64,000 nucleotides of DNA from Cyanophora paradoxa CCMP329 (lineage: Eukaryota > Plantae > Glaucophyta): positions 1 through 64,000 of the forward strand of contig QPMI01000005.1 in NCBI GenBank assembly GCA_004431415.1. The letters run 5' to 3'. This document shows positions 12,240 through 21,195 of this stretch, one piece after another (within the stretch, counting starts at the first letter, position 1; every line of letters starts with the position of its first letter). Under the pieces are notes generated by a model, which worked only from the letters and a program-made list of their open reading frames with translations, was not told where the DNA came from and ran no database searches. The position numbers were made by a program, and so were the translations under genes.

Positions 12240-15200
12240 TCACGCCGCTCCCGGGGGCAGGTGCGGGCGGGCGGGCTCCGCGGGGACCGTCGCGGGGCGG
12301 GCGCCGGAGCGCAGGCCCAGGCCCCCGAGCGAGGGGGCCGACTGCGTGACGGAGAGGTGCCCGGGGCCGCGCCCGTGGGGCCCCAGCCCGGCCCCGGCGC
12401 CGGCGCCGGCGGGCGGCGGTTCGGCTCCGGCGGGCGCCAGTATGCTGCTCCTCCGGCGCCCCCCGCCCGACGCAGAGGAGCGGCGTACCCCGTCCGCCGT
12501 GGACGCCCGCCTATTCCGCGGCGGGGGTACGTATCTGAGGCCCGGCGGGAGGTCGCCGGGCGGGGGGGGTAGGTCGCCGAAGGAGAGGCTCCCTGCGGAC
12601 GCGCTCATGCCGGCCTCGTGCCGCAGCCTCCGCGCCTCCGCCCGCGCGTTCGCAAAGTCCAGAGCCTGCCGTACCCCGGTCAAGGGGGGCGGGCGGGGTG
12701 AGACGGAGGCGGGGATGGGGGTACGCGCACCGCCTGGTGGACGGGGTCGAGGGGGGTAGAGACGCGGACGCGGCCGGCGGCGGTCTGGGCCCGGGGGGGA
12801 GAGGCCGAGCGGGAGTCCGGGGAGGGGGAGCGGGAGCCGCGCTCCCTGAGGAGCCGCATGGACGGGAGGGGTACCGCCATGTACTTCCGGAAGAGGCGGG
12901 CCCCCACGCCGCCCGACTTAAGCGGCCCTTTCGCCGCAGCCGCGGCGGCCGCCCTGCCCTCCTGCCCGGGGGCCGCGGGCCCCGCCCCCGCCCCCCGGTG
13001 CCGCGCCTTCTTGGCCTGGCGAGCGTTCGCCCAGCCCGTGAGGTTCAGCGGGTCCTCCTGTACCCGGGACCACCATCAGCGGACAGCAAACGGAATCAAA
13101 CAACAGCAAACAGCGGCGGGCGCGCCTCGCGCATCCTCTCCTCTTCGGCCTCGTCCTCTTCCTGGGCCGAGTTGGCGGCCGCCTCCTCCGCGCTGCTCCC
13201 CGAGCTGCTCTCCTCGCTCCACGCGCCGGCCCCGCCGCCGCCGCCCACCGCCTGCCGCAGCGGCGAGCCGTCCGAGCTGCGCCGCGGCGAACGAAGTGAG
13301 CCTCTGCGGACGCGCCGAAGGGAGGAGGGCGGCACCTCAGAAAGGCGGAGACCTCGGCGCCCTGCGCGGCCAGCTCGGCGAGCTTCATGAGGGACATGCG
13401 CCGCGACATGCGCCGCGCGGCGAGCTGCGCCACCGCCCCCGCGAGGCCCGGCGCCAGGCCAAGCGCCCCCGGGGCCGTCGCTGAGTGCTGCAGCTGCAGC
13501 TGCTGCAGGGCCGCCGGCGTCGCCACGCGCTCCGCGTCCGCCCGCGCCTCCGCCGCCGCCTGCCGCGCCAGCCTGCGCGCCACCGTCAGAAGAGGCCTCG
13601 TTCTCTAGCATTCACGGTGCAGTAGCTCTAGACGGCTACAGCTAGCGACGACCTGGCGCCGGGGCCGGTGCGGGGCCGGGCGGCTCGCACCGGCGGCGGC
13701 GGCGGAGGCGGCGCTCCTCGCGGGCGAGCTCCTCCGCGTCGAAGACCACGGGGCTCGCGTCCAGCAGCGCCTGCCCCCGCGATGAGGAGGAGGGCGCGGG
13801 CGGGCGGCGGGGGGGCCGGGCCCGGGGCCCCTCGGCGGGCGTTCTCTAGGCTCTTTAGGCTCTAGCGTCAAGTCCAGGTCCGGCCAGATTCAAGCCTCTT
13901 GGGGACGGCCGCCTGCAGGGCGCACCTGGAGGGCGCTCAGGCCGCTCGGCCGCTTCGGCGGGCCCGCCGGCGCCGTCTGCGAGGGGCGTGAGGGGCGGAA
14001 GAAGATTCGAGGGGGTAGAGAGAGGAAGGGGTCTGTTAGAGGAGGCTCAGTGGAGTCTCACTCACTTGGGGCGGGTTGAGGAGGACGGTGGATGCGAGGG
14101 AGGTGCCGGAGTAGGTGCGCGGCAGGCTCGCCGCCGTCGACGCCCGCCTGCACGCGGGCGGGTCAAGGACAGGTGGGCAGAGATGTAAGGGTAGACAGAG
14201 CGGCCAGCAAGCATCTTCTGTGCGGCGCAGCGCAGCGGGCGGGCGGGCGGGAGGACGGGCGGACCTGATGCCGGCGATGACAGCGCCCGGCGGGAGGAGG
14301 CTCGAGCCGGCGAGGCCATCGCTCGTCGAGGGCCGCCGCTGGTCCGGCTGCTGCCAGCTGAAGGAGTCGGGGCGAGAGCCCGGGACGGAGGCGGCGGCGG
14401 GGGGAGAAGCCGACGCCGCCGCCGCCGTTGTTGACGGGCGGGGCGCGGCGGCGCCGGCGGCGGCGGCGGGCGGCAGCGCGGGGCGGGGCTTGAGGGTCGC
14501 CAGGAGCCCCGCCGCGTCCGGGGCGGGGGCGGCCTCCAGGGAGGCAGCGCTCCCGATCGAGGGCGCCGCCTTCCCAGGGCCGGGGGACCGCTGGCCCCTC
14601 TGCACGCCCGCCGGCCCCTGCCCCTGCGGCGACTTCGCTGCGGCCGCCCGCGCGGCCCCGGCCGCCGCCGCGACCGGCGACGGGGAGGAGGGGGAAGGGG
14701 AGGGGAACGGTCGCCTGCAACGTCGAGCGGCTGCGGCGCGGCGAGCCGCGCCGCTTTCCTCGACGGCTGCGCCGACTCGGGCGGCCCCGGCAACGGCTGC
14801 GGCGACGGCGCGTCGGCGTCCGGCCCCGGGGAGGGCACGCGCGCCCTCTCGGGGTCCGCCTGCGGCTCGCGGGGCGCCGCCGCCTCGCGGGGCTCGGATT
14901 CCGTACCCCCCCGCGGGGCCTCCCCCCCGGGTCCCTCTGCGCCCTCGTGCGGCGGGGCGGGGCGCGGGTCCCCCGGCTCGTCCTCCTCGGAGCCAGTGGG
15001 CGACGGCTGCCCCGACGAGGACCCCGGAAGGAACGACACCAGCGATTTCATCCCCCGGATCTTGCCGCGTACCCGTCAGCTCACGAGCGAGGAAACGCGC
15101 GGGAACAAGCAAGAGCGTGCTCGGACCTTCTTCAGGGCCCCCTGGATGTGCCGCGACTCAGAGACGAGGGAGCGGGGGGGGAAGAGCCCGCCCTTGATCC

Positions 15201-18200
15201 ACTGCCAGGGGCATCACCGCGGCCCGCGAGGCGGGGTACGGGGCCCGCAGAGCCCGGCCGGGGTACACACCTTCCCGCAGTTGGACAGGTACTCGATCCT
15301 AAGGGCGTACCCGATCTGCAAAGCGGGGAGGGGGGCGGCGCTGAGGAAGGGCGGGGGAGGAAGGCAAGAGGGGTACGGCAAAGCCTGCCTGCTGCGGCGC
15401 CAGCATACGCCGCGCGAAGTAATGTTCCGCCGTCACGCGCGATAGGACGCCCTTACCGGGCGGGACGTCACGGTGGGCGTGACGTCACGGGGAGGGGAAG
15501 CATAGGAGGGGGGTAGGATACCTTGACGTCCATCTGGATGACGTACGTCAGCTCGCTGCTGCGCTCGTCGACCTCCCGAACGATGAAGCCCTGCCGCCCC
15601 GCGCCCCGCCCTGTCAGAAGGCCCTCTTTCTAGCGCTCCCGAGTCGAGACGCGAGCTAGCGGAGCTGCGTTGCGCTGGAAGGGAGACATCGATAGCCGCG
15701 TCCCGCCGCGCCCCGCCGCTCGGCGTATCCCCGCCCCCTCTCGCTCCCCGCCCCGCCCCGCCCCGCCCCGCCGCGCGGCGCACCCCCTTGAAGACGTGCG
15801 CCCGGATGAACTGCCCCTCCACCTTGACTGCGCGCCCCGATTCAGAACAGCGCAGCTCCGCGGAAAAAGAGAAGCAGGGTAAAGCAGGGTTAAGCGGAGC
15901 ACCCTTCTTGTGGATGACGGATCGGTAGGCGATCACGAACATGCGCGCGTGCAGGTCGCGCTGCAGAGAGAGGGAGCCGTGTCAGCGGGACCGGCGCCCG
16001 CCCGCCCTCTCGCCCCAGAGCCCGGCAGCCAGACGGGTGCTGGCGCCCACCTGGACGGTGGCGACGAGGACCATGTTGCGGGGGAGGTGACCCGGGAGCA
16101 GGTTCGTCTCCTCCACGTAGTCGACCCGCGTCGTCCGCTCCAGCTCGTCCACCACCCCGCACCGCAGCGCCAGCTGCGCGGGGGGTACCGGAGTCAGTGA
16201 GTTTAGCTAAGGAAGCTAGATAGAAAGCTTCTTGGAAGATAAGCTTAGATCTATGAGATCTGAGCTCCGCTACCGGATCTACGAGATCTAATCTAGGGAT
16301 CAAATTCAAGGATGGTCGGAGCTAGCTCGCGCGGGGCCGCCCGCCGGCCAGCCCGCCGCCCAAGATGAGCTTAGATGTGTGGGATCTGTCTTAGGGGGCT
16401 CGGAATCCACGAGATCTAATCCAGGGATCAAATTCGAGGACGGACGCACCTTGTCCCACTTGGTGCGGCTCGTGGGGTCCCATAGGAAGTTCGCCGTCCG
16501 CCACGCCGGCGCCTGCGCGCACGTTCAGAGATCCGTTCTGGCCGGCTAGCTAACGAGCCCGGCCGGGAGGGCGCGCTGACGCTGTTCGAGACTCTAGCTA
16601 TAGCTATGGAAGCTTCTGAGACTCTATAGAAATGGAAACTAAGGAAGCTTTTAATGTAGACGAGCGGGCGGGCGGGGCGGGCGGGCGGCGCGGGCGGAGC
16701 GGACGGACCGGGATGATGAGGGCGGACTTGAGGATGGGGGGCCGGTTCGGGAGGGGGTCCTCCCGGTGCATGCGCCGGATCTGGGGGGCGGGGGCGCGTG
16801 AGGGGCGCGTGAGGGGCGCGCGAGGGACGCCCGGGCGTGGGTAGGTAGCCCGGGTGGAGGCCGGCGGATTTGAGTCCGGCGTGAGCGCATAAGGAGCGGC
16901 ACGGCGTGGAAGATGGCCCGGGGGCGAGTGGATTGCGAGGGGTCGAGAGCCCGCCGGGGGTAGAGGCCCGCGGGTGAGGGCCTGACCTTCTCGCCCGGGA
17001 GGGGCCCGTGGTCCGTCCAGAGCAGATCGGCGCCCGAGAACTGCGGGGAGGAGTCAGCTCGGGCCTAAAGAGAGGCGGATGCCATGCAAGGCCCCGAAGC
17101 AAGCCAAGCTAGGTTCTCGGGCCTCGGATCGCAGCCGCCGCCGCCCGCCCGGCCTCCCTCCCTCGCTCACCTCGCGGCGGACGTCGAGGAGGGCGTCGGC
17201 CGCCTCCCGCTTGTAGTACTCCTTCGCGTACATCGTCTGCTCCGGCTGCGCGGGCGCGGGCAGAGCGGGGCGGCTCGGCTCGGGTCGGGGGGGCGCCGGC
17301 GAGCGAGCGAGCCTGGGGGCGGGCCGGGGGCCGGGGGCCGGGGCGGGGCGGCGCGGGGCGGGCCGGGCCGCGGCGCGCAAGCGTGGCGTGGGGCGGCTAG
17401 CTTCCTTTCTAGCAGCCGCGGGCTCCGGCTAGCTTTCGGCTCGGGGGCCGCGAGCGGAGCTCGGGGGCGAGCGAGCGCGGGCGCAGGGCTCCTGAGCGAG
17501 CCGGGGGTCGGGCGTCGCGCGGCTAGCTTGCTAGCAGCCGCGAGCCCCGCCCAGCTTCATCTCGCCCTCGACCGTAGGCGCGCTCACGCGCCGTGGCGAC
17601 CCTCTTCGAGCCGATAGATAGAATAAAGGTCTAGATCTAGATAGAAGAAGGTCTAGATCTAGAAAGAATAAAAACAGATAAAAGTCTAGATAGATAGATC
17701 TAGATACTCGCGGCTCTTGTAAAAGAATCTTATAGAATCTTAAGAATCTGTAGATAGATCTAGACCTCCCCCTTGAAAACGCGCACCGTGGCGACCTTCT
17801 TGGCGCCGTGCGCCTCGCCGCGGTCCACGCCGAGGAACAGCACGTGCGCCATGTCGAACCTGGGCGGAGAGTAAAGTAAGCTAAGACCAAGAAGGCCAAA
17901 GACTAGGTAAGCCAAGCTGTAAAGGCTAAGAGCAGAGAGTAAGCCAAGCTGTCGAGGCTAAGAGCGGAGAGTAAAGCAAGCTAAGACCAGGCTATCGAGG
18001 CCAGGCAGAGGCGGACCGGGGGGTGCCCTCCTCGGCGGCCGGGCCCTCCGGCTCCTCCCACGAGGGCGAGACGAGCCGCTCGGCCCACTTCAAAAAGTCC
18101 TTGGCAAGGGCCCGCCCGCTCTTCATGAAGGCTCGGAAGAGGCCCATCTCGTTCATGCAGAGCACTGCGCGCCGCGCGGCGTCGGGTGAGGCGGGGGCGC

Positions 18201-18690
18201 CGGCGGGACGGCGGCCCCGCTCCGCTACACGGACCGTCCTTGTCGACGAAGTACGAGGGGCTGACCTCCTCTCGGATGCGGTAGAACGCAAAGCACTCCT
18301 CCCTGCCGCGCCCCGGCCATCGGCTCGCGCCAGGGCCCGGCGAGCCGACCCGGCGAGGCGCACCGGGGGAGAGTCTCCAGCTCGATCTCCAGCAGCGCGG
18401 CGACGTCCTGCGGGCGTGCGGATCGGCTCGGGCGCCCGGACCCTAGGGGCTGGGCGGGGCGGGACCTTGGCCAGGAGGACCTTGCGGCCCGAGCGCTCCG
18501 CAAAGCGCAGCAGGCGCGGGGCCGGTAGGTCGGCGTGGCTGAACTCCAGGGTTCCCTGGAGTAGCTAAGTCAGCGAGGCGCGCCGCGGCAGGCTGGGGCC
18601 GAGCTGGCTGGCCTGCTTGTCGGAGAGATTGACCTCCATGTCGCCATGGTGCGGCACGCCGCTGGGGCCGTGCCTCCTGGTGACCTGCAT
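12240..18690 (-). CDS. BRO-N domain + START domain protein with long low-complexity/coiled-coil tail; start codon uncertain
   Basis: Exons at 18555-18050 splice in frame to LRFAERSGRKVLLAKDVAALLEI...VLCMNEMGLFRAFMKSGRALAKDFLKWAERLVSPS (BRO-N-like). Exons at ~17040-15150 give ILKSALIIP|APAWRTANFLWDPTSRTKWDK, PRNMVLV, FVIAYRSVIH, FIRAHVFKG, GFIVREV..ELTYVIQMDVK (START). The tail ends at TGA 12240. Confidence 0.72.
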
Positions 18691-19070
18691 GCTTTCTCAG
18701 CCTCGCGATGAGTCTCTGCGCATCCCTAACCCCGCGTGTTTCCTCGGCTGCTCACGGTGGGTGCCTTGCGGCTCGGAGCAGGCGTGTTGCTGTTCCCCCG
18801 GTCGCGCTGCCGGCCCTGAGGGTCCGCCATTGCTGCGGGACGAGGACCTACTCTGCGAATCCTATGCTACGACGAAAGCGGGCTGGAAACGCTCGTCATT
18901 GCCCGAGCCCGGCGCCGCCTCTCAGCGCCGCGCGACAGCTCTTTGTCGATCAGTTCTGCTAGCTAATAAAAACGGGGCGCCGAGGCTGGGGTCGCTGAGT
19001 CGAAGCCTCCGAGAAAAGAAAGAGGAGCCTCCACGAGTCGAACCCGCCCAGACAGTCGTTCAAAAGGCCT

Positions 19071-21195
19071 ATGGAGCCCCCCGAGACTCCCGCGGACGGC
19101 AGAGCCGCCGTGCAACAGCCGATGGACATCGCTGGCCGGCCGAGCGACGACGGCCCGCGCGAGCCGCTCGGGCGCTGTTCCCTTTGCGCCGCGGAGCTGT
19201 ATGCGCGGGACCTCGTCGTCGAGTGTGGTTCGTACGCCCGGATGCCCGCACAGCTCGCACTCACTCCTGCCCAGCCGAGTGCCTGGACGTGCGGCTGTGC
19301 TTCCAATGCTTCCTGGCGAGCAAGGAGGGCGCGGGACACAAGGCGGTGCACATGTACACACGCATCGAGAACGCGAACTTCCCGCTCCTCTCGGACGACT
19401 GGTGCGCATGCGTCGGGCACTCGGGGCTGCTCGACGCTCACCTTGCGCAGGGGCGCCGACGAGGAACTGGCACTTCTAGAGGCGCTTGAGCGGCACGGCA
19501 TCGGGCCCTGGCAGACTGTCGCCGAGGAGGTGCGCTAACAGGGCGTTCGAATTCAGACGCGGAGGTCCGGCAGCTAAGACCGCCGAATCAGGTCGGCACG
19601 AAGACGTGGTGGGAATGCGAACGGCACTACGCGCAAACATACCTTCAGGGCATGAGCGCCCCTCTTCCTGTGCATAATTTTCCAGCATCTCATCTTTGCT
19701 CGGGTTCTAAGAACCGTGCAGGATTTCGAGAAAGCTTTCGGTGGAATCGGGACGCCCGTGAAACCGCGTGAGCAGCAGGCCGAGCGGCCAGCACCTCTTG
19801 CCGAGCAAAGGTGGGATCGTCCAAGAGGCCAGCAAGGATCGAAACGCCCGTCAAAAAAGCCCCGCTCACATCTGGCAGTGAGTTTCTGCTTGCGCCATCT
19901 TTGACGTGTTCTCAGTGCTGCTGTGCAGCAAGGGGAGGAGGATGGATGCTACCATCCAGACGTTCGAGGATACATGCCGAAACGTGGAGACTTCGATACA
20001 GAATGGGCCAACGATGCTGAGGTTGTTATTCAGGTCAGCTTTTTCGGACAATAAAGCCCAGGATCATTTTGACCTTCTTGCCAGGATATTGCATTCGACC
20101 CCTCGGACGGCCCCAGGGACCGAGGTGCAGACACATTCTTTCTTGGCTATGCTCTTGTCCAAACATTTTCTGCAGCGCTCAAGCTGGAGGTGCTGCATGC
20201 ATACAATGCAAAATTGACGGAGCGGGAGTTCAGGAAGACGTTCCTGATCGAAAGAGGGCTGCTGGACTTGAAGAAACAGCATGCAGCAGAGAGACGGAGA
20301 GGCAAGGATGATCGCGATACATTGGTGCGAATGAAGCCATTTGCCAGGTTTCACGCAGCAAAAGAGCACGAGGCATTATTCCACGGTCTTGTAGGTTTGT
20401 GTTATTCCCAATTCGTTTTGGGCTGGCATTGCCCTGACACATCTCAGAGGAGCGCAAGCTCAGAGGAGAGATAGCAAGGCTGCAGCGGTATCGGAGGCTG
20501 GGCATTCGATCACTTGCTGAGACACACGCCTACGAGAATGATCGCCGGAAGAGGGTGAGCTCTAACATGTGGACTTTGCCTAATGTCTGATCCTGTTTTG
20601 TAGGAGATTGAGGCAGATGAAAAGAAGGCGAAGTGCTTCATGAAGCTTGGCTCCAGTTCAGTCACTCAATCTTCTGGAACGACCAGTGCCAGGCGCTCGA
20701 CCAAGGTGTGTGTCAAACTTTCGTGGCAGCAGATTCTTGCTCACACTTCGTGCAGGGAGAGCCCCTGCTTATGCTTGGTGCGGATGCCGATAACAACAAA
20801 CGAAGGAAGAAGAAGGGAAAGGGACCCAGTCTGCCCCCCCTAGCTCTCCACGGACTTCCGGGCGAGGATCAGCTGGAGCCTGAGGAGTTGGCCTTGTGCT
20901 CTCAACTCCACATGCTTCCAGAGCAGGCGTGTTGACGTATTCCAGATCTCGCGCATGCAGTCCTCCTCGTCTCTGACCCAGATGCACACAGTACCTGCTC
21001 GCGAAGGACGCGCTCATCTGTGCAGACACTCCAACTGGAAAGTGCTCAGCAGCGGATGCTGTTAAGATCCTTGCACGCCGACTGGGTGCTTTGCTTGCGG
21101 ACTATCATTCTTGTTGCGTCTGACCCTTTCTTCTAGATGCTGGGCGGGCAACAAGCATCCACAACTTGCTCATCTCGAAGGGGTGGATCGAGTAG
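19071..21195 (+). CDS. ADA2: transcriptional adaptor ADA2 (ZZ zinc finger, SANT, SWIRM)
   Basis: CSLC...[15 protein letters not shown]...H...Y; DW|[26 protein letters not shown]|VGTKT..CERHY; [13 protein letters not shown]; C-terminal [18 protein letters not shown]|YL...KGWIE*. Confidence 0.92.

Follow-up and report, generated by a model that had tools for sequence, protein, structure and literature searches.

The coupling of a START domain to a DNA-binding domain is regarded as a hallmark of the plant HD-ZIP III/IV transcription factors, and records of the Bro-N domain otherwise come from phages, baculoviruses and giant viruses. In HD-ZIP III/IV proteins, START promotes dimerisation and renders the transcription factor competent for DNA binding (PMC10226595); that ligand binding by START gates this competence was shown only recently (PMC10226595). 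Here we describe a gene of the glaucophyte Cyanophora paradoxa CCMP329, located in the first 64,000 nucleotides (nt) of contig QPMI01000005.1 (assembly GCA_004431415.1), a stretch referred to below as the window. The gene lies on the minus strand and begins at ATG 18830. We consider it fairly probable that its main messenger RNA (mRNA) is the product of a single nuclear gene which combines a Bro-N domain, a START-like region and a low-complexity tail, and that the encoded protein is a regulator.

Logan contigs from four runs were mapped to positions 13900-19300 (5401 letters): X1, X2 and X4 are presumed to be RNA, with X1 and X2 belonging to one study and X4 to another, and X8 is DNA-like. The RNA runs present canonical joints at almost every predicted intron (17040/17171, 16780/16987, 16173/16450, 15960/16051, 15827/15903, 15201/15271 and 15060/15127). 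The DNA run presents none of these joints, and contains a contiguous 2.9-kb contig over 17846-19300. Record 10 of X2 is a single spliced contig of 1727 nt that spans 18989 to 14804, with pieces at 18754-18989, 18465-18554, 18015-18164, 16051-16173 and 14804-15060. The exons of our model between 18989 and 14804 also sum to 1727 nt, an exact agreement that requires exon 5 to end at 17787 and a 63-nt exon at 15451-15389 to be included.

Given this length arithmetic and the zero X2 depth over 17339-17700, the junction is placed at 17787|17245. The mRNA drops a 541-nt GT..AG intron (17786-17246), so that PEQTMYAKEYY... follows ...KKVAT in frame. In bin 17701-17881, the X2 depth corresponds to approximately 71-73 nt of exon 5, not to 94 nt. 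Record 6 of X1 (805 nt) likewise exits exon 5 at approximately 17787 by depth, in a bin that fits only a 73-nt exon, with the other 83 nt lying elsewhere. The coding sequence that begins at the ATG comprises 1311 nt, or 437 codons, by the end of exon 15, and its frame is open throughout. The first-pass annotation of this DNA had claimed that the Bro-N exons continue into START-like exons without a stop and in compatible phase, and the 1727-nt contig and the intron at 17786-17246 bear this out. A split into two genes around 17300-17750 was looked for in the RNA contigs, in which the X2 contig joins both sides.

Among 1.84 billion representative proteins, a phmmer search with exon 4 retrieved a 198-amino-acid (aa) protein that is 100% identical, namely the public model tig00000042_g15390.t1 (EukProt EP00741, Cyanophora paradoxa), hereafter P0001. 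The features of the gene, with the evidence for each, are as follows, where boundaries denotes splice sites read from the sequence.

18756..18989 (-): first exon (exon A), 5' leader with a short upstream open reading frame, and main ATG at 18830-18828; RNA pieces 18754-18989 in X1, X2 and X4; the start of P0001, MADPQGRQ..., equals open reading frame 18726-18830.
18613..18684 (-): exon B, 72 nt, GC donor at 18612-18611; P0001 ...VTRRHGPSGVPHHGDMEVNLSDKQ|GTLEF and contig arithmetic.
18466..18555 (-): exon 1, start of the Bro-N domain (LLRFAERSGRKVLLAK); boundaries, P0001 and X2 record 10 piece 18465-18554.
18364..18407 (-): exon 2, Bro-N (DVAALLEIELETLP); boundaries and P0001.
18235..18302 (-): exon 3, Bro-N; boundaries and P0001.
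18017..18164 (-): exon 4, C-terminal half of the Bro-N domain (MNEMGLFRAFMKSGRALAKDFLKWAERLVSPS); boundaries, P0001, RNA pieces 18015-18164 in X1, X2 and X4, and hhalign.
17787..17859 (-): exon 5 as in RNA, 73 nt, linker, donor gtgcgc at 17786; X2 contig arithmetic and depth in bin 17701-17881.
17760..17786 (-): read-through segment to TAG 17762-17760; C-terminus of P0001 (...VRVFKGEV) and faint X1 intron coverage (record 5).
17246..17786 (-): intron, 541 nt, GT..AG, low-complexity repeats; zero X2 depth over 17339-17700 with one contig on both sides, and the length sum of 1727.
17171..17245 (-): exon 6, first START-like exon (PEQTMYAKEYYKRE...), contains ATG 17233; boundaries and joint 17040/17171.
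16987..17040 (-): exon 7; joints 17040/17171 and 16780/16987.
16709..16780 (-): exon 8; boundaries and joint 16780/16987.
16450..16512 (-): exon 9 (...DPTSRTKWDK); boundaries and joint 16173/16450.
16051..16173 (-): exon 10; RNA pieces 16051-16173 in X1, X2 and X4.
15903..15960 (-): exon 11; joints 15960/16051 and 15827/15903.
15784..15827 (-): exon 12; boundaries and joint 15827/15903.
15522..15590 (-): exon 13 (...TYVIQMDVK); boundaries and joint 15450/15521.
15389..15451 (-): extra exon, 63 nt (GVLSRVTAEHYFARRMLAPQQ), GC donor; joints 15450/15521 and 15315/15389, the latter printed CT..GC.
15271..15315 (-): exon 14; joints 15315/15389 and 15201/15271.
15127..15201 (-): exon 15, end of the START-like region; joints 15201/15271 and 15060/15127.
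14265..15060 (-): exon 16, 796 nt, Pro/Ala/Ser-rich disordered tail; joints 15060/15127 and 14146/14264.
14066..14147 (-): exon 17; joints 14146/14264 and 13976/14066 in X1, X2 and X4.
13926..13976 (-): exon 18; joint 13976/14066, donor from sequence reading.
12243..13770 (-): probable further exons (basic and coiled-coil-like, acidic Ser-rich), to a TGA near 12243; sequence reading.

All minus-strand exon boundaries rebuilt from the first reading present AG/GT and keep the frame, and its in-frame Bro-N-like sequence of four exons is identical to P0001 residue for residue. The boundaries and frame of that exon model therefore stand, but exon 5 ends at 17787 (donor 17786) and not at 17766 (donor 17765). 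The model also omitted the 63-nt exon at 15451-15389, the two 5' exons that precede the Bro-N exons, and a tail of more than 300 aa, as the gene extends past 15150.

Three further observations concern the gene structure. GC donors, and not GT, are found in two of twenty introns: at 18611-18612 in the annotated model, and at 15387-15388, where the RNA joint is printed CT..GC. The 5' leader holds a 10-codon upstream open reading frame (ATG ACG AGC ... TAG) at 18866-18898, upstream of the main ATG 18830. Introns at 17600-17760 and 16230-16440 contain AT-richer low-complexity repeats of ctagatctag and tagatct units, and the exons are GC-rich.

The N-terminal part of the protein (about aa 52-152) is very probably a Bro-N domain split by three spliceosomal introns, judging from sequence comparisons of five kinds. 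In Pfam, Bro-N (PF02498) is the only family found for P0001, with an E-value of 0.042 and 14.9 bits. When aa 50-160 are searched alone, the match presents an E-value of 0.0094 and 17.0 bits, and covers profile positions 10-90 of 96. Five anti-repressor families of PHROG match aa 65-151 weakly (E 0.02-0.16). Of the 30 clusters nearest to it in an ESM-atlas feature search, 14 are Bro-N (score 0.92; 173 of 256 features shared), and P22 anti-repressor clusters come next. A tblastn search against 50,697 phage records yielded 67 weak matches, the best with an E-value of 0.06. Among the matches listed, all 35 rows with a named product are anti-repressor genes, and the others are the same loci annotated as hypothetical plus one unannotated record.

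Ten of the phage proteins matched by tblastn are genuine Bro-N proteins (Pfam E 1e-13 to 1e-33), and their domains were aligned (alignment A1). They represent phages of eight host genera, plus an uncultured freshwater phage. Comparing P0001 with A1 by hhalign yielded a probability of 96.5% and an E-value of 7.5e-10 over 79 columns, with aa 70-154 aligned to template columns 19-102. Ten of the thirteen invariant non-Met columns of A1 are kept (D80, L84, G124, L125, S132, A137, F140, W143, V148 and P150). The invariant W26/F27 of A1 correspond to aliphatic residues in P0001, and I102 is not kept. These five lines converge on the Bro-N assignment that the first-pass annotation had proposed for the N-terminal part.

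Close relatives of this part were not retrieved by any of the searches. Besides the gene's own model, phmmer with exon 4 against the representative proteins found one spurious bacterial CARDB protein, and a word search with P0001 found P0001 itself. Searches with P0001 yielded chance matches in the PDB (phmmer) and no relatives in IMG/VR and the JGI metagenomes. An NCBIfam search gave no match, and no paralogues were found within the window. The earlier interpretation of the locus as a whole holds for the Bro-N assignment and for the continuous in-frame transcript. Viral descent is not established as the source of the Bro-N part: sequence comparison revealed no close relative, be it viral or cellular, and identity to phage Bro-N is approximately 29%. 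Given the three introns within the domain, the gene is old in the nuclear lineage.

The approximately 245-aa region that follows, distributed over eleven small exons, is likely a START domain or a close helix-grip relative, as suggested by its motifs when compared with the START consensus. Read by eye, exons 7-15 present START hallmarks in the expected order and spacing: ...SRTKWDK, LPRNMVLVATVQRD, FVIAYRSVIH, GQFIRAHVFKGGFIV and SELTYVIQMDVKG, after which comes a helix-like stretch. The consensus (R..WD; P-R-[DN]-x-V; SV.H; G..R; TYV.Q.D.KG) was compared by eye with exons 9-13 and the extra exon, a comparison that serves as a lead. A Pfam search of the exon 11-12 piece found nothing.

After exon 15, the RNA goes on into the 796-nt exon (15060-14265), and joints 14146/14264 and 13976/14066 place two or more additional exons behind it. 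According to sequence reading, the tail is Pro/Ala/Ser-rich, with one stretch that is Arg-rich and coiled-coil-like and another that is acidic and Ser-rich; in Pfam, its seven stop-free pieces present no domain. Within exon 16, the assembly is one G short in the run at 14702-14705, as RNA contigs of both X1 and X4 insert a G after 14701. Restoring this G takes the frame out of Arg-rich nonsense and into what looks like a plausible disordered region, in phase with the splice sites that follow. There is hence a 1-nt frameshift in the assembly at 14701-14705, probably caused by a long-read homopolymer error, and it would disrupt gene models derived from the genome at this place. A separate observation concerns 14409-14470, a GC-rich, low-complexity stretch coding for Ala and Pro, where large numbers of unrelated RNA contigs accumulate and terminate in loose ends, at depths of up to 335. 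Given such low-complexity sequence is common to other transcripts, this depth is not a measure of expression.

In comparison with the public annotation, our gene model and P0001 share the start codon and exons A, B and 1-4, and do not differ at any residue of aa 1-190. P0001 then departs from the RNA by reading 8 codons beyond donor 17786 to TAG 17760, whereas in the RNA contigs the splice leads to 17245 and more than 500 further codons follow. In the intron-rich Cyanophora paradoxa genome, whose guanine-cytosine content is 67.6%, a gene contains 9.2 introns on average and an intron averages 86 bp; according to the genome paper, the Augustus models "require additional manual curation" (PMC6704402). 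The split in the annotation is most likely due to the 541-nt intron, which is to be compared with a genome mean of 86 nt, together with the 1-nt assembly error downstream. An annotated model of a downstream gene was sought via the tail exon, and none was found (candidates of 183-581 aa in frame A and of 205-652 aa in frame B), a result that carries little weight owing to length limits. The supplements of the genome paper contain no gene identifiers of this locus and no PF01852 or PF02498 (PMC6704402). As a consequence of the annotation split and the assembly frameshift, the architecture would be missed by domain surveys based on proteomes.

Several points weigh against a single gene with this architecture and function. 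The X1, X2 and X4 data are contigs rather than reads, their RNA label is guessed, and the junction 17787|17245 was inferred via lengths and depth, as the joint itself is not displayed. For the Bro-N part, the 14.9-17 bits in Pfam fall under the gathering threshold of 25.6 bits, and single-sequence prediction with AlphaFold2 (AF2) yielded no usable model, with a predicted local distance difference test (pLDDT) of 36 for the whole protein and 50 for the domain. In addition, the hhalign templates were selected from weak matches to the C-terminal half of the query. The N-terminal half of the hhalign match (RKVLLAKDVAALL versus pWFVAxDVAxxLGY) played no part in that choice, and hence provides independent support. 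For the START-like region, ten single-exon pieces gave zero Pfam matches at E<=10, and exon 10 alone gave zero PDB matches by phmmer, noise at 0.80 in the ESM atlas and two chance matches by tblastn against plasmids; the START-like exons, of 14-41 aa, are too short to score. No orthologue that would show a conserved architecture was found. Finally, the phage members of the Bro-N family act as anti-repressors, for which it is not settled whether the binding partner is DNA or a protein.

Concerning the domain itself, the likeness to Bro-N could be due to chance, with the N-terminal part being an unrelated, lineage-specific domain. Each method taken singly gives a weak score (sub-threshold in Pfam, E above 0.02 in PHROG, a best E of 0.06 in tblastn), and phmmer and the word search found no homologues. 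However, five different methods agree on one family, hhalign extends over 79 columns at 96.5%, and ten of thirteen invariant non-Met columns are kept, so that we regard a chance likeness as very improbable. As for the gene, the fused transcript would be an artefact if the locus were as annotated, that is, two separate genes encoding a 198-aa Bro-N protein that ends at TAG 17760 and a START protein that starts at ATG 17233, with the joined contig being a read-through product or an assembly chimera. The joined form lacks exactly 17786-17246, with GT..AG ends and in frame; X2 and X4 have zero depth over 17339-17700; the depth of exon 5 fits 73 nt and not the 94 nt or more needed for the annotated end; and a de Bruijn contig requires reads that span the junction. 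These values outweigh the termination of the public model (P0001, ...VRVFKGEV*), the in-frame ATG located four codons into exon 6, the faint 160-nt contig that X1 has within the intron at 17429-17588 (depth 3), and the fact that a contig across two genes does not by itself show a single transcript. We hence consider two genes improbable. The faint X1 contig leaves room for a possible minor isoform that retains the intron and yields the annotated 198-aa product ending at TAG 17760.

If the gene encodes one fused protein, this protein might still not be a DNA-binding regulator. The Bro-N part would then be a protein-binding module, in the style of phage anti-repressors, or a targeting module for a START protein involved in lipid transfer or lipid sensing. 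We consider this unlikely, yet less so than the two alternatives above, given that the nearest sequence relatives are all phage anti-repressors. In baculoviral BRO proteins, on the other hand, Bro-N is generally held to be DNA-binding, and the long tail of the Cyanophora protein, with its acidic and basic stretches, fits a nuclear regulator. Outside plants, most START proteins are lipid carriers (PMC10377203), which favours a lipid-transfer protein, whereas the listing of Bro-N among giant-virus DNA-binding proteins (PMC13712841) disfavours it.

The gene's 5' end (18989, minus strand) lies close to a divergent neighbour on the plus strand, whose RNA contigs begin at 19053-19063. The gap of approximately 60 nt (18990-19052) suggests a compact bidirectional promoter. 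The first open reading frame of this neighbour, which resembles a ZZ + SANT adaptor, matches Myb/SANT weakly (E 0.0028).

Under the favoured reading of one fused regulator, the protein would act in a sequence-specific or chromatin-associated manner. Its Bro-N module would bind DNA, or possibly a protein partner, and would be coupled to a pocket for a hydrophobic ligand and to a disordered effector tail. A ligand in the START-like pocket may then tune how active the Bro-N module is, by way of dimerisation, competence for DNA binding, or stability and turnover. The literature searched yielded no paper that deals with both Bro-N and Cyanophora, and no description of a Bro-N + START architecture; the one article found to contain both Bro-N and a START domain surveys prokaryotic toxin-antitoxin systems. 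We tentatively raise the somewhat doubtful possibility that glaucophytes built their own lipid- or sterol-gated transcription regulators by capturing START onto a Bro-N DNA-binding domain, which would make this gene a cellular, intron-rich Bro-N regulator and a START-coupled factor outside green plants. If true, DNA-binding modules would have repeatedly and convergently performed a "domain capture" of START early in Archaeplastida. A START-like pocket joined to a quite different DNA-binding-type module in a glaucophyte would then suggest that this regulatory logic arose more than once, and the gene would give Bro-N a testable cellular role.

In comparison with the Bro-N domains (PF02498) of phage Ant and of baculovirus and giant-virus BRO proteins, the Cyanophora domain is collinear over nearly its whole length, and keeps the motifs AKDVAxxL and NExGL[FY]...S...AKxFxxW...V.PS. 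It differs from the phage domains in the invariant W-F pair, which is V/L-L in the Cyanophora protein. Unlike its phage and viral counterparts, the domain is encoded in a nuclear gene with three introns inside it, and has no KilA-C/ANT partner at its C-terminus, the START-like region being in that place.

The architecture resembles that of the plant lipid-gated transcription factors, and the proposed protein would be a START-coupled, ligand-gated regulator analogous to the HD-ZIP III/IV factors, with a different DNA-binding-type module. Both have a domain of nucleic-acid-binding type N-terminal to a START-type pocket (putative, by motif reading, in the present case) in one polypeptide. In contrast to HD-ZIP III/IV, the Cyanophora protein has neither a homeodomain nor a leucine zipper; in the Pfam searches of P0001 and of the exon and tail pieces, no homeodomain was detected. 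Hence, the gene is not a member of HD-ZIP III/IV but at most an analogue, in which the candidate for DNA binding is Bro-N and the host is a glaucophyte, not a green plant.

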